Source: Saccostrea echinata (Eukaryota). Taken from it: a stretch of 64,000 nucleotides of DNA. A model generated the notes under the pieces. The model made no database searches. It was not told where the DNA came from and worked only from the letters and a program-made list of their open reading frames with translations. Numbering within the stretch: position 1 is the stretch's first letter; every line of letters starts with the position of its first letter. Shown here one piece after another: positions 13,601-16,048 of the stretch. The position numbers were made by a program, and so were the translations under genes. Location of the stretch: the NCBI RefSeq assembly GCF_033153115.1, contig NW_026889750.1:8804001-8868000 (forward strand), read 5' to 3'.

Positions 13601-16048
13601 TCCGAGATTCATGAAATACTAAGATACTTAAACATGTAACTTGTAAGTATGAAGCATAAGACTCGGTGGTCTAATGAGTTATGCTAAAAATCTAATGACT
13701 GCTGGTCCTAACCTAAATGCTAGAACTGGCACTTGATATTATAAATTTTCATTAAAAGTTAGAAGTGGGAGTTACTACTTCTGTAAGATTGATACATGTT
13801 TATCTTAAACTTTGTAGAATGAAGTGCATCTAATCAAGGCTGGTGACAGGGTAGGGTCATCTGAGTCCACTCTCCTGAACATGTTGAACATCTCTCCATT
13901 TTCTTACGGACTTGTCCTTGAGAAAGGTATATGTCGATACAATGCAGTGTGTTTTTGTAGATGTGAATGATTCAGTGTTCTATCCAAGGATGAATCTTCA
14001 ACCTGTTGTGAGTTCAGGACACCAAAGTATCAGAACCAGAAATGGTTGAACCCACTGATGCTTGTCTTGGACTAAGACCAAGAAACTGCCAGTTATGGCT
14101 GTCTGAGGATGAACATTATTTAGTAACCTGAAACATAACTTGCTGAAACCATGAGTATCCTATGTAGATAAAAGTATGTTACCAAGAAAAACAAAAATTG
14201 ATCTTGATAATTTTACAGGTCATTTGATTATCCCAGGTCCTACAATGTTATTGACTCATATTTTCAACATGCAGTGAAACAGTAACTCTTTGTTGCATTG
14301 CATGTTGAAAATCTGTGCAATGTATAAAGCAGTGTTTCTGACCAAGTTAATACTGATTGAAGTGCAGTGTTAAGATTTTGGTAGAGAAGGTGCTCAGATA
14401 GTGACCAATCTGTCGATCCAAAACTCGCTTGTCCCGACTAAATTTTCTCCTCTTGTGGCCCAAACTGGCTTGTACTTCACCCCATAGAGTGCTCATAGAT
14501 AGAGGGGTGTGACCATTAACCAAGTTTCTAGATCAAAGGTTATATTAAAAAAACAATCTTTGTCAAAAGCAAATTAACTCTCCCCTCGGCCCATTCTCAC
14601 CCATACTTCACCCAGAGTGCCTGTGGGTAGAGGATTGCAGTGACGTTGAACAAATTTCTTAGGTCAAAGGTCAAGATAATAGAAGATCTCGGTGTAAAAT
14701 CATTGTCTGGACTGTATTTTCTCTCCTGTTGGAGGGAAAAACCATCTGTGATCATGAAAGTATTTTGATGGTTGGTTCTTCATTTGGCTTCAGTTTTGAC
14801 CATATTCAAGTCCTTTATCTACAAGATACAGTTAAACTTTGGTATCTCCAACATGGATATTTCGAATACCATGGATATGTCAATGTGATTTTGAAGTCCC
14901 ATCTGCTTATTCCTTAAGTATTTTACCCTGGATATCTCAAATCCTTGGTTATCTTGAAGTATTTTCTTGGTCCCTTCGAGTTCAAGATAACGAGGTTTCA
15001 CTGTATTCTTAAAACAAGGCAATTTCTAAGTTTCTGACTGTATGTACTATAAATATGGCAAATTTATGGCAATAATGAATTTATAGATTCAATATATTGA
15101 TTATCAAACTGTTCTCATAAAATTACATGTATGTCAGAGTTTTCTTTGTTCTGTGATGAACAAATTGTCTGTTGTGAGTTTAGGACACCAAAGTATCAGA
15201 ACCAGAAATGGTTGAACCCACTGATGCTTGTCCTGGACTAAGACCAAGAAACTGCCAGTGATGGCTGTCTGAGGACTTGAGAAAATTCTTGACATCTGAT
15301 GAATGTTGGCTTTTATACAAAATTTTTGAGTTTGCTCTTTACATCAGATTTTTGATCCCATTTACTCTGAAACGATCAATTTAAGACTACTCTTTCTTTA
15401 ACAGTGTATGACTCTGGTACCATTTTTGAGCCTGAGATTCTGGACATTACTGATGAGGATCTGAGAGACAAATTCATGATTGTGAGTCAAATTATTTCAT
15501 AACTTTTAAAAGTTTTTTTGTTGTTGAATTTTTGCAATCATTTGCTTTATATAAACCAGTCATTTGTAACTAATACGATTCGGAAATTAACCTTTCTGTT
15601 TTAGGGAGTGAGAAATATTGCAGCCCTCTCCCTTGTCATTGGGTACCCAACGGCTGCCTCTGCCCCCCACTCTATTGCCAACGGATTTAAGAGACTCCTT
15701 GCCATTGCTGTGGAAACTGACTACACTTTCCCTGAGGCTGAAAAGGTGATGTTTTATTTGAATTTATTCTGAATAACATTAATACAATCCCTAGTTACAT
15801 CTGATACTATCAGTTCAGCTGTGTAGGTGATGATGTGTATTGTGTGAATTCTGTATACCAGAATGTGATAGGTTTGAAAATTTGTTGTCACTTTTCAGAC
15901 CAAGGAGTACTTGAAGGATCCCAGCAAGTTTGCGGCTGCTGCCCCTGTGGCCGCCGCCGCTGCTGCTCCTGCAGCCACCAAAGAGGAGAAGAAACCAGAG
16001 CCAGAGTCGGAATCCGACGATGACATGGGCTTTGGGCTTTTTGACTAA
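7625..16048 (+). CDS. RPLP0: 60S acidic ribosomal protein P0 (uL10), 313 aa
   Basis: Coding exons 7625-7678, 9158-9257, 12865-12940, 13066-13153, 13338-13484, 13818-13926, 15405-15481, 15605-15745, 15899-16048; all GT-AG and in phase (942 nt). Translation [71 protein letters not shown]. Confidence 0.98.
7770..8816. mobile_element. Non-autonomous DNA transposon (hAT-like, 6-bp TSD) in RPLP0 intron 2
   Basis: 15-bp TIR CAGGGTTTCAGATTG / CAATCTGAAACCCTG; TTAAAT duplicated at 7764-7769 and 8817-8822. Confidence 0.8.
8528..8609. repeat. Perfect 35-bp inverted repeat with 12-nt spacer
   Basis: ATTCTTTTAACAATTCTTTCACCGCATAATTAAAT (8528-8562) and its exact reverse complement (8575-8609). Confidence 0.95.
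9584..10384 (+). mobile_element. hAT MITE (420-bp family) carrying a nested Kolobok-like insert
   Basis: TAGGAGTGAAACG...CGTTTCACCCCTC; 8-bp TSD GGCACATC at 9576-9583 and 10385-10392. Confidence 0.88.
9873..10254. mobile_element. Kolobok-like MITE (TTAA TSD)
   Basis: TIR GGACCCTCTCTACACT / AGTGTAGAGAGGGTTC with TTAA on both sides. Confidence 0.8.
10421..10840 (+). mobile_element. Young 420-bp hAT MITE
   Basis: TIR TAGGAGTGAAACG / CGTTTCACCCCTA; exact 8-bp TSD ATGAGTAG; near-identical inverted copy at 32403-32822. Confidence 0.93.
11526..12543. mobile_element. Kolobok-like non-autonomous element (TTAA TSD)
   Basis: TIR GGGGATGAAGGAC / GTCCTTCTTCCCC flanked by TTAA (11522-11525, 12544-12547). 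Confidence 0.82.
13981..14111 (+). ncRNA. SNORD22: Intronic box C/D snoRNA, U22 (SNORD22)-like, copy 1
   Basis: Terminal stem TATCC/GGATG; box C variant AGGATGA (13987-13993); box D CTGA (14103-14106); stems AGTTCAGGACA/TGTCTTGGACT and GTATCAG/CTGATGC closing a loop ending GGTTGAACCCA (human U22 as recalled: GTCCCAG..AAAGGTGAACCCA.CTGGGAC); 3' hairpin GCCA-GTTA-TGGC then TGTCTGA. Confidence 0.8.
14400..14820 (+). repeat. Degenerate Helentron/HINE-type internal repeat remnant
   Basis: Units TTGTCC..TTTTCTC..TGGCCCA..CTTCACCCA(TA)GAGTGC..GGTCAAAGGTCAAG also present at 19490-20000. Confidence 0.5.
14829..15003. mobile_element. Tc1/Mariner-like MITE
   Basis: TA|CAGTTAAACTTTGGTATCTC...GATAACGAGGTTTCACTG|TA; TA TSD and CAGT termini. 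Confidence 0.75.
15148..15276 (+). ncRNA. SNORD22: Intronic box C/D snoRNA, U22 (SNORD22)-like, copy 2
   Basis: Terminal stem GTTC/GGAC; canonical box C GTGATGA (15153-15159); box D CTGA (15269-15272); core nearly identical to copy 1, with stem differences that keep base pairing. Confidence 0.82.

Follow-up and report, generated by a model that had tools for sequence, protein, structure and literature searches.

Which RNA is encoded by a 107-nt sequence that occurs twice within a single intron of the ribosomal-protein gene RPLP0 of Saccostrea echinata, and do both copies encode it? We examined the window, i.e. the whole 64,000-nt stretch of DNA containing this intron, together with the assembly from which it was taken. 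The reading that we favor, to which we assign a probability of about 0.72, is that this intron carries two paralogous candidate genes, each for a 130-nt RNA that corresponds in invertebrates to U22 (SNORD22). U22 belongs to a small group of snoRNAs on which rRNA cleavage, and not modification, depends. Xenopus needs it to mature its 18S rRNA (Tycowski et al. 1994, cited in PMC2943600 and PMC7277114), by a mode of action still unknown according to PMC7277114, and it is described from vertebrates only in PMC2943600 (2010) and PMC6315972 (2018). Judged against the latter two papers, the locus would probably represent the first protostome U22, residing in a new host gene.

The host intron and its two RNA copies

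The intron and the exons most relevant to it are as follows.

13818–13926, + strand: RPLP0 exon 5' of the host intron (tblastn)
13927–15404, + strand: RPLP0 host intron with GT/AG ends; the upstream exon ends ...GLVLEK and the downstream exon begins VYDSGTIF...
15405–15481, + strand: RPLP0 exon 3' of the host intron (tblastn)
15899–16048, + strand: final RPLP0 exon (read directly from the sequence)

Using a full-length RPLP0 protein as tblastn query, we located the other exons at 9161–9250, 12864–12941, 13064–13156, 13338–13484 and 15605–15745; two representative proteins resembling mammalian RPLP0 (P0031 and P0037) were left aside. Both copies lie inside an intron of this translation/ribosome-class gene; exon mapping and the GT/AG ends agree with an earlier note on this DNA, which had placed them in RPLP0 and not in an SNHG1-type gene. 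The RPLP0 introns hold no further snoRNAs detectable by motif scan and Rfam, and the motif scan found no additional snoRNA-sized C/D candidate across 7000–16600.

The repeat search returned one family of two 107-nt copies, 97% identical and spaced by 1166 nt, with flanks that cannot be aligned, which is the arrangement that the earlier note had described. That note had added that a core of high copy number elsewhere in the genome would speak against its reading. Across all 923 Mb of the assembly, a DNA search detects the core at only two places, both of them here, a count that rules out a dispersed or high-copy repeat. The copies and their cores are:

13982–14111, + strand: U22-like box C/D snoRNA copy 1, 130 nt (SNORD22 35.1 bits, model positions 1–126 of 126)
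14003–14109, + strand: shared core of copy 1, 107 nt, with the GAACCCA bulge at 14048–14054
15148–15277, + strand: U22-like box C/D snoRNA copy 2, 130 nt (SNORD22 29.8 bits, full length)
15169–15275, + strand: shared core of copy 2, 107 nt, with the GAACCCA bulge at 15214–15220

The box C, box D and terminal stem previously ascribed to each copy can all be located. In copy 1, box C is the variant AGGAUGA (13987–13993), box D is CUGA (14103–14106) and the terminal stem is AUCC/GGAU. In copy 2, these elements are a canonical box C, GUGAUGA (15153–15159), CUGA (15269–15272) and GUUC/GGAC, respectively. We note that the second position of the copy 1 box C is G, not U. With C and D boxes, terminal stems of 4–5 bp and a length of 130 nt, both RNAs have the general make-up of U22. 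At terminal-stem pair 1/129, copy 1 has A-U where copy 2 has G-C, and at RNA positions 14–21 (13995–14002 versus 15161–15168) the copies differ at all eight bases. The core itself consists of a long interrupted stem, an inner hairpin with a GAAA loop, the 7-nt GAACCCA bulge, a linker, a 3' hairpin and box D. As isolated 130-nt RNAs, copy 1 folds at -42.2 kcal/mol (z -3.6 versus shuffles) and copy 2 at -41 kcal/mol (z -3.3).

Minimum-free-energy folding with flanks extends both structures into the surrounding intron:

13974–13980, + strand: external stem of copy 1, 5' half, pairing with 14111–14117
14111–14117, + strand: external stem of copy 1, 3' half
15131–15146, + strand: external stem of copy 2, 16 bp, 5' half, pairing with 15279–15295 (z -5.5)
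15279–15295, + strand: external stem of copy 2, 3' half

External stems serve snoRNAs that lie outside the optimal distance to the 3' splice site; here the 3' ends of copy 2 and copy 1 are 127 nt and 1293 nt from it, respectively. The external duplex of copy 2 (-19.8 kcal/mol) is matched by 0.05% of shuffles and by 0.4% of window positions. That of copy 1 adds to the terminal stem, giving 11 bp interrupted by a single bulged U, and its -10.9 kcal/mol is a modest gain over chance (p about 0.07).

Comparison with vertebrate U22

No match in the whole window reaches the Rfam gathering thresholds, and the SNORD22 signal emerges only under E-value thresholds. The earlier note had called the RNAs U22-like, and the SNORD22 covariance model agrees at this sub-threshold level: copy 1 (35.1 bits, E 0.003) and copy 2 (29.8 bits, E 0.094) match full length below the curated gathering score of 50, and are the top two SNORD22 matches in the 923-Mb genome, the next best scoring 25.6 bits. 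The intron gives no Rfam match to U3, U8, U13, U14 or CeR-2 at E values up to 10. Since the Rfam SNORD22 model encodes just a 4-bp terminal stem, the internal fold of the two copies constitutes independent evidence.

For this second line of evidence, the comparison set comprised the Rfam consensus and one vertebrate U22 locus, L015, which scores 151 bits to SNORD22 and adjoins a SNORD27. It is one of five loci obtained when metagenome contigs were scanned for a pattern combining the U22 core with box D; the other four match by chance and lie in sequence of bacterial appearance. Scans for the core motif in contigs of prokaryote genomes and of viruses likewise gave chance matches only, as confirmed with R1, a covariance model derived exclusively from the two copies and their structure. 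We do not regard L015 as human, as several of its positions deviate from the Rfam consensus where this is strongly conserved, and its SNORD27–SNORD22 adjacency is unlike human SNHG1, for which the snoRNA order listed in PMC4378963 does not place SNORD27 next to SNORD22.

Model R1, to which copy 1 scores 160 bits, retrieves the vertebrate U22 over its full length (45.2 bits, E 2e-10), with no further match in 115 kb, in the entire S. echinata genome or in chance-match control loci totalling 100 kb. The L015 U22 folds independently (by minimum free energy) into the same helices as both copies, and RNAalifold recovers the common structure. A standard pair forms in the vertebrate RNA at 34 of the 35 model pairs, 13 of which are changed on both sides. 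In the model-fitted alignment, whose fitting to the structure inflates pairing, 98% of cells pair, and the 13 both-side changes compare with at most 4 in slid controls and were reached in 0 of 500 shuffles. Identity to vertebrate U22 is 54% overall, 78% in the central hairpin–bulge domain and near 40–50% outside this domain and the box D block, whereas no base differs in the 7-nt GAACCCA bulge or in the CUGUCUGAGG box D block.

Both copies share with vertebrate U22 (RF00099, 125–126 nt versus 130 nt here) the architecture that the earlier note had described, a large stem-loop with GAACCCA on the 3' side and a small hairpin abutting UGUCUGA. The resemblance encompasses intron encoding, the box C/D motif with a short terminal stem, a long interrupted helix, the GAAA-type inner hairpin, the GAACCCA bulge followed by CUG, a 4–5 bp hairpin whose last base directly precedes UGUCUGAGG, and the lack of a methylation-guide element. 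The differences concern the host, which is protein-coding RPLP0 here and non-coding SNHG1/UHG in vertebrates, the presence of two copies in one intron, the sequences of the outer helix and linker, and box C, which is UGAAGA in vertebrate U22, canonical in copy 2 and a G-variant in copy 1. The comparison outlines a deep footprint, in which the helices, the GAACCCA bulge, the GAAA-type inner loop and the CUGUCUGAGG block are fixed relative to vertebrates while the rest drifts, and this footprint narrows which nucleotides to mutate in a U22 depletion–rescue assay. A protostome counterpart, if true, would move the origin of U22 back to early bilaterians and imply that U22 switched host genes, being in RPLP0 here and in SNHG1 in vertebrates.

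Divergence of the copies and alternative readings

The cores differ by C-G to U-G at pair 34/88, G-U to G-C at pair 36/86, and a loop change from GUUA to GUGA, exactly as described before, and neither copy loses any of the 35 pairs that make up the common fold. The further claim of the earlier note, that these differences imply selection on both copies, is not supported by this argument: three benign substitutions are too few, and by a rough estimate about one in five random substitution triples would be equally benign. Gene conversion fits a core of 97% identity, in which the weakly constrained linkers are identical too, at least as well; the near-identity may reflect conversion rather than selection. 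A better case for two working genes comes from the box C, terminal stem and external stem that each copy has of its own, each drawn from unrelated sequence. The combination of near-identical cores with fully diverged box C-proximal spacers and flanks points to an old duplication, and indicates that gene conversion and/or very strong constraint has since prevented the cores from diverging.

The 1036 nt between the copies (14112–15147) are partly transposon-derived:

14408–14732, no strand assigned: old dispersed/tandem repeat, two units of ~150 nt (~70% identity to many loci; 574 first-look candidates)
14826–15007, no strand assigned: SINE-like high-copy element of ~180 nt (~90% identity to relatives; 4200 first-look candidates)

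The repeat units at 14408–14732 do not belong to the RNA genes, and the SINE-like element inserted later, moving these genes further apart. The spacer also holds a unique, very stable 25-bp hairpin.

Could the RNA instead be an orphan, lineage-specific box C/D snoRNA, whose 10-mers and helices resemble U22 by chance or convergence and not by inheritance? SNORD22 scores under the gathering cut-off, identity near 40–50% outside the best conserved parts and the single vertebrate sequence in the comparison would all suit such an RNA. We nevertheless regard it as improbable, given full-length matches in both directions (the reciprocal one at E 2e-10 with no other match in the S. echinata genome), the identical 7-nt bulge at the equivalent structural position, and the retention of all six helices, 13 of whose pairs carry changes on both sides. 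Moreover, R1 misses the SNORD27 next door on L015, and generic C/D features are therefore not behind its score. An assembly artefact, or a neutral segmental duplication without function, is scarcely credible: one assembly was seen and nothing specific speaks in its favor, while the box C register is kept between wholly different flanks, the terminal and external stems of one copy are independent of those of the other, and different transposons lie between the copies.

A more restrictive reading holds that there is one working gene, probably copy 2, and that the other is a duplicate without stable expression, whose similarity is maintained by gene conversion. Copy 2 has the canonical box C, the strong external stem and the position closer to the 3' splice site, and copy 1, with its AGGAUGA variant, weak external stem (p about 0.07) and remote 3' end, might work less well or not at all; with just three core differences, selection on both copies cannot be proven. 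Yet copy 1 has the higher SNORD22 score (35.1 versus 29.8 bits), keeps 35 of 35 pairs and its own 4–5 bp terminal stem, and shows a compensatory A-U/G-C change relative to copy 2, while the box C of vertebrate U22 is itself non-canonical (UGAAGA). We consider a single working gene doubtful. Less likely still, in our estimate, is that the main product is a ~1.3-kb snoRNP-capped lncRNA (13982–15277) or a cryptic-exon, NMD-targeted RPLP0 isoform, making the locus an RPLP0 regulatory element. Two C/D snoRNAs per intron is the architecture that yields human sno-lncRNAs, and the unique spacer hairpin would be in keeping with such a product; however, about half of the spacer consists of later transposon or repeat insertions, which argues against a conserved lncRNA body, and the RPLP0 exon junctions agree with those of orthologues, with no extra coding exon.

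Proposed release, rRNA complementarity and role

The C/D kink-turn needs boxes C and D to be joined by a terminal stem, and each terminal stem here would bring the two boxes together. As RPLP0 pre-mRNA is transcribed, Snu13, Nop56, Nop58 and fibrillarin would assemble on each C/D motif, aided by external stems from the flanking intron, clearly for copy 2 and weakly for copy 1. The debranched or cleaved intron would then be trimmed by exonucleases back to the snoRNP. Obtaining both RNAs from one lariat would call for an endonucleolytic cut in the 1036-nt spacer; otherwise, a snoRNP-capped 1.3-kb species would remain. Such species are known from human 15q11-13, where sno-lncRNAs arise from introns with two snoRNAs whose snoRNPs protect the RNA between them. 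The RPLP0 intron is similar in having two box C/D snoRNAs, 1036 nt apart, but differs in carrying one snoRNA species at both ends and in having a spacer made up largely of repeats.

The earlier note had also seen a departure from the rule of one snoRNA per intron. Two C/D RNAs do share this intron, but the layout is less unusual than supposed, as intronic snoRNA clusters are known in rice and, for the H/ACA class, in Drosophila, whose C/D class is said to be one-per-intron (PMC3089462). The likeness to the rice and Drosophila clusters lies in having more than one snoRNA per intron, which implies splicing-independent or endonucleolytic processing; unlike the Drosophila H/ACA clusters, the clustered RNAs here are C/D and paralogues of a processing snoRNA, not modification guides. 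A similar comparison can be drawn with the processing C/D snoRNAs U3, U8, U13 and U14 and C. elegans CeR-2 (PMC2943600). Like these, the RNAs here are larger than guide snoRNAs, have a structured body and, by analogy, may act in pre-rRNA cleavage. They are intronic, whereas the others are mostly independently transcribed and capped.

Complementarity to rRNA was sought in the species' own sequences. No Watson–Crick match of at least 9 nt to the 5'ETS, 18S or ITS1 was found, and for 18S and ITS/5.8S/28S the best ungapped duplex scores (27–31) fall within those of shuffles (mean 30.3–30.6). As rRNA complementarity does not exceed chance and the 3' hairpin ties up the nucleotides that precede box D, we rejected a methylation-guide reading for rRNA targets. 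UGGGUUC, the complement of GAACCCA, occurs at nt 1113 of the 18S and at -154 in the 5'ETS, the former within a stretch that we take to be conserved across eukaryotes, just 5' of helix 27. We treat this complementarity as a lead only, as the pairing cannot be extended and a given 7-mer is expected by chance in a 1.8-kb RNA about one time in nine.

By analogy with Xenopus U22, the mature RNP would be a non-modifying chaperone in the small-subunit processome, acting in the cleavages at both 18S ends, with the invariant GAACCCA bulge and its flanking helices as the likely contact surface. We infer this 18S-processing role from vertebrates only. A bolder proposal would have U22 be at least as old as the bilaterian ancestor, GAACCCA, as its only invariant unpaired element, pair with the 18S UGGGUUC, and the intron possibly yield a U22-capped 1.3-kb RNA. 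We hold this proposal to be speculative and unlikely as a whole; if true, the GAACCCA–18S pairing would for the first time explain in concrete terms how U22 acts in 18S maturation. With its two copies, the intron also provides a natural test case for the release of paired C/D snoRNAs.

As a separate observation on the host gene, RPLP0 exon 15605–15745, when used as a protein query, retrieves exon-sized ORF fragments on related genomic contigs (e.g., P0002, 91% identical).

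Two box C/D RNAs in one RPLP0 intron

Two intact C/D RNAs with a U22 body lie within a single intron of RPLP0, arranged with the exons and shared core as follows.

9161-9250, RPLP0 exon (tblastn)
12864-12941, RPLP0 exon (tblastn)
13064-13156, RPLP0 exon (tblastn)
13338-13484, RPLP0 exon (tblastn)
13818-13926, RPLP0 exon upstream of the host intron (tblastn)
13927-15404, host intron with GT and AG ends
13982-14111, U22-like box C/D RNA, copy 1 (130 nt, limits from the Rfam alignment)
14003-14109, shared core of copy 1 (107 nt, repeat search)
15148-15277, U22-like box C/D RNA, copy 2 (130 nt, limits from the Rfam alignment)
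15169-15275, shared core of copy 2 (107 nt, repeat search)
15405-15481, RPLP0 exon downstream of the host intron (tblastn)
15605-15745, RPLP0 exon (tblastn)
15899-16048, RPLP0 C-terminal exon (read from the sequence)

On sequence grounds the host gene is RPLP0, as the earlier note had held. The exons found by tblastn with a full-length RPLP0 representative, compared singly by reference, enclose an intron with consensus ends, across which the frame passes from ...GLVLEK to VYDSGTIF... as in RPLP0 orthologues. The C-terminal exon closes with an acidic tail of the kind usual in ribosomal stalk proteins.

The repeat search, with region 13800-15500 also read directly, returns one family of two members with 97% identity at a spacing of 1166 nt, in agreement with the core of about 105 nt and unrelated flanks noticed earlier. 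In an ungapped alignment, identity drops to background on either side of the core, save for a six-base GAUGAA block that stands in the same register in both copies, 16 nt 5' of the core. The possibility raised earlier that the core is a high-copy repeat is set aside, because in the whole 923-Mb assembly a DNA search locates it at these two places only.

Each copy carries its own boxes and terminal stem, as previously described: box C is the canonical GUGAUGA in copy 2 and AGGAUGA in copy 1, CUGA lies 5 nt from the 3' end in both, and the terminal stems are AUCC/GGAU (copy 1) and GUUC/GGAC (copy 2), with terminal pair 1/129 being A-U in copy 1 and G-C in copy 2. Both fold into a common body (z -3.6 and -3.3 for copies 1 and 2): a long helix that an internal loop breaks up, a 5-bp inner hairpin whose loop is GAAA, GAACCCA as a 7-nt bulge on the 3' side, then a linker and a 4-bp hairpin stopping exactly before UGUCUGA. 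The three core differences are those first read (C-G to U-G, G-U to G-C and a single change in a loop), and all 35 pairs of the common fold are intact in each copy. The 8-nt segment after box C differs at 8/8 positions.

Relation to U22

The whole window has no Rfam hit at gathering thresholds. At E-value thresholds, both copies match SNORD22 (RF00099) over the full model (1-126 of 126) with 35.1 and 29.8 bits, below the 50 bits for formal membership, and no other Rfam family gives a comparable match. Against the entire genome, RF00099 finds the copies as its two top-scoring matches (per-genome E 0.003 and 0.094) among 43 scored of many first-look candidates, the remaining matches beginning at 25.6 bits. 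Since the only structure encoded in the Rfam model is a 4-bp terminal stem, the internal fold is evidence outside the score.

A pattern scan of metagenome contigs yielded one genuine vertebrate U22 locus, L015, scoring 151 bits to SNORD22. This 1.1-kb contig, host DNA in a metagenome assembly, carries vertebrate SNORD27 (725-793, minus strand) and SNORD22 (289-414, minus strand) in adjacent introns, an arrangement as in SNHG1-type hosts; it is not regarded as human. The minimum-energy fold of the L015 U22 has the same helices and bulge as the copies, with a 5-bp hairpin abutting UGUCUGA, so that the U22 body described in the earlier note (big stem-loop, GAACCCA on its 3' side, hairpin before UGUCUGA) is borne out.

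We built a covariance model, R1, that uses the sequences of the two copies and the 35 pairs of their fold alone. R1 finds the L015 U22 over its full length (45.2 bits, E 2e-10) and nothing else in the 115 kb searched, the adjacent SNORD27 included; it finds nothing beyond the two copies in the animal's own genome, and short local matches at most in 100 kb of chance-match control loci. In the model-fitted alignment of the copies and the L015 U22, which leans towards structure, 98% of pair cells hold standard pairs and 13 of the 35 pairs are changed on both sides (slid controls, at most 4), values reached by 0/500 shuffles. The independent folds of the copies and the L015 U22 argue that this modelled agreement is real, and RNAalifold recovers the shared structure from a plain MAFFT alignment. 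Identity to U22, for one vertebrate sequence and two copies from one animal, comes to 54% over the whole RNA and to 78% within the central hairpin-bulge domain.

Homology of both RNAs with U22 is thus well supported by the full-length match, the reciprocal R1 match and the shared fold. The kinship with U22 first proposed is supported, while formal Rfam membership is not reached.

No report of an invertebrate U22 was found in the literature searched, which did not take in Marz et al. 2011, the survey most likely to bear on it. We rate the pair as a probable addition to the U22 family, a known RNA family that here, unlike in vertebrates, would occupy a new host gene, RPLP0. A 2018 paper still speaks of U22 as described in vertebrates (PMC6315972), and in a 2020 review its mechanism is given as unknown (PMC7277114).

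Search for rRNA pairing and proposed processing

The animal's own 18S locus (L010, G000:C195) holds no Watson-Crick match of at least 9 nt to either RNA across 1.5 kb of 5'ETS, 18S and 1.5 kb downstream. The best ungapped duplexes lie inside the shuffled-RNA range, both for the 5'ETS/18S stretch and for ITS1/5.8S/ITS2/28S. Because the segment 5' of box D is held in a hairpin and the diverged segment after box C differs throughout, these RNAs are not methylation guides, the lack of above-shuffle rRNA pairing pointing the same way. The textbook view of U22 itself is likewise that it is no methylation guide. The exact complement of the invariant bulge, UGGGUUC, occurs at 18S nt 1113 and 5'ETS -154, two occurrences in the 4.8-kb stretch around 18S versus 0.3 expected, with none in ITS1/5.8S/ITS2/28S. 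We offer this pairing as a hypothesis rather than a finding, because chance alone should produce a match of 7 nt, with no extension possible, about once per nine 18S-sized RNAs.

With its flanks, each copy is predicted to form an external stem of unrelated intron sequence. That of copy 1 (7 extra pairs, -10.9 kcal/mol) is modestly unusual only (p about 0.07), and that of copy 2 (16 extra pairs, -19.8 kcal/mol) has an energy reached by 0.05% of shuffles and matched by 0.4% of equally spaced window positions. Assembly of the core proteins on each kink-turn would be expected from established snoRNP biology, with the external stems helping, since copy 2 lies 127 nt and copy 1 lies 1293 nt from the 3' splice site, both off the classical spacing of about 70-80 nt. 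Exonucleases would then trim down to the RNP. Release of both RNAs from one lariat would need a cut in the spacer, or would leave a snoRNP-capped RNA of about 1.3 kb. Intronic clusters with likewise more than one snoRNA per intron are known in rice and among Drosophila H/ACA RNAs (PMC3089462). By analogy with Xenopus U22, placed in 18S maturation by work cited in PMC2943600 and PMC7277114, the pair may act in 18S maturation.

History of the pair and neighboring elements

Between the copies, sequence has diverged to randomness in the flanks, the terminal stems and the 8-nt spacer next to box C. The 107-nt core, its linkers included, has only three changes; in these linkers the animal and vertebrates differ freely. 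It is implausible that a recent duplication placed the core alone where a box C, a terminal stem and an external stem were already waiting; therefore the loci are old, and gene conversion and/or strong constraint has kept their cores alike. The earlier claim that the core differences imply selection on both copies does not follow, as three benign substitutions alone do not demonstrate it.

Later insertions, namely the old repeat and the SINE-like element listed below, make up about half of the 1036-nt spacer, and the remaining stretch 14112-14390 is single-copy.

14257-14315, both strands, near-perfect hairpin of 25 bp with a 9-nt loop
14408-14732, old repeat in two tandem units of about 150 nt
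14826-15007, high-copy SINE-like element of about 180 nt

The old repeat has many relatives, dispersed and tandem, at about 70-77% identity; ORF-like fragments resembling it recur near 19460-20000. The SINE-like element, about 90% identical to its relatives, has first-look candidates in the thousands genome-wide and resembles a young SINE/MITE insertion. Apart from its own reverse complement, the hairpin has no second copy in the genome; it folds at -31.1 kcal/mol (14240-14332, z -5.1) and gives sub-threshold Rfam microRNA-precursor matches (mir-3118, 30.1 bits; mir-33, 24.4 bits); an intronic miRNA-like hairpin is one possible reading, the relic of a small inverted-repeat element another.

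Elsewhere in RPLP0, the long intron 9251-12863 holds several copies of a repeated unit, with near-identical mechanical ORFs at 9589-9723 and 10426-10623 and related minus-strand ORFs. A palindromic hairpin at 8516-8623, upstream of or within the 5' part of the gene, has sub-threshold plant-miRNA-family matches on both strands (MIR5512, 42.8 bits versus a gathering threshold of 139) and is probably an inverted-repeat element. Just 3' of the stop codon lie a sub-threshold tRNA-like match (16591-16662, plus strand, 23.5 bits versus 29) and a sub-threshold H/ACA-like match to the S. pombe snR91 model (16741-16876, minus strand, 30 bits versus 50).
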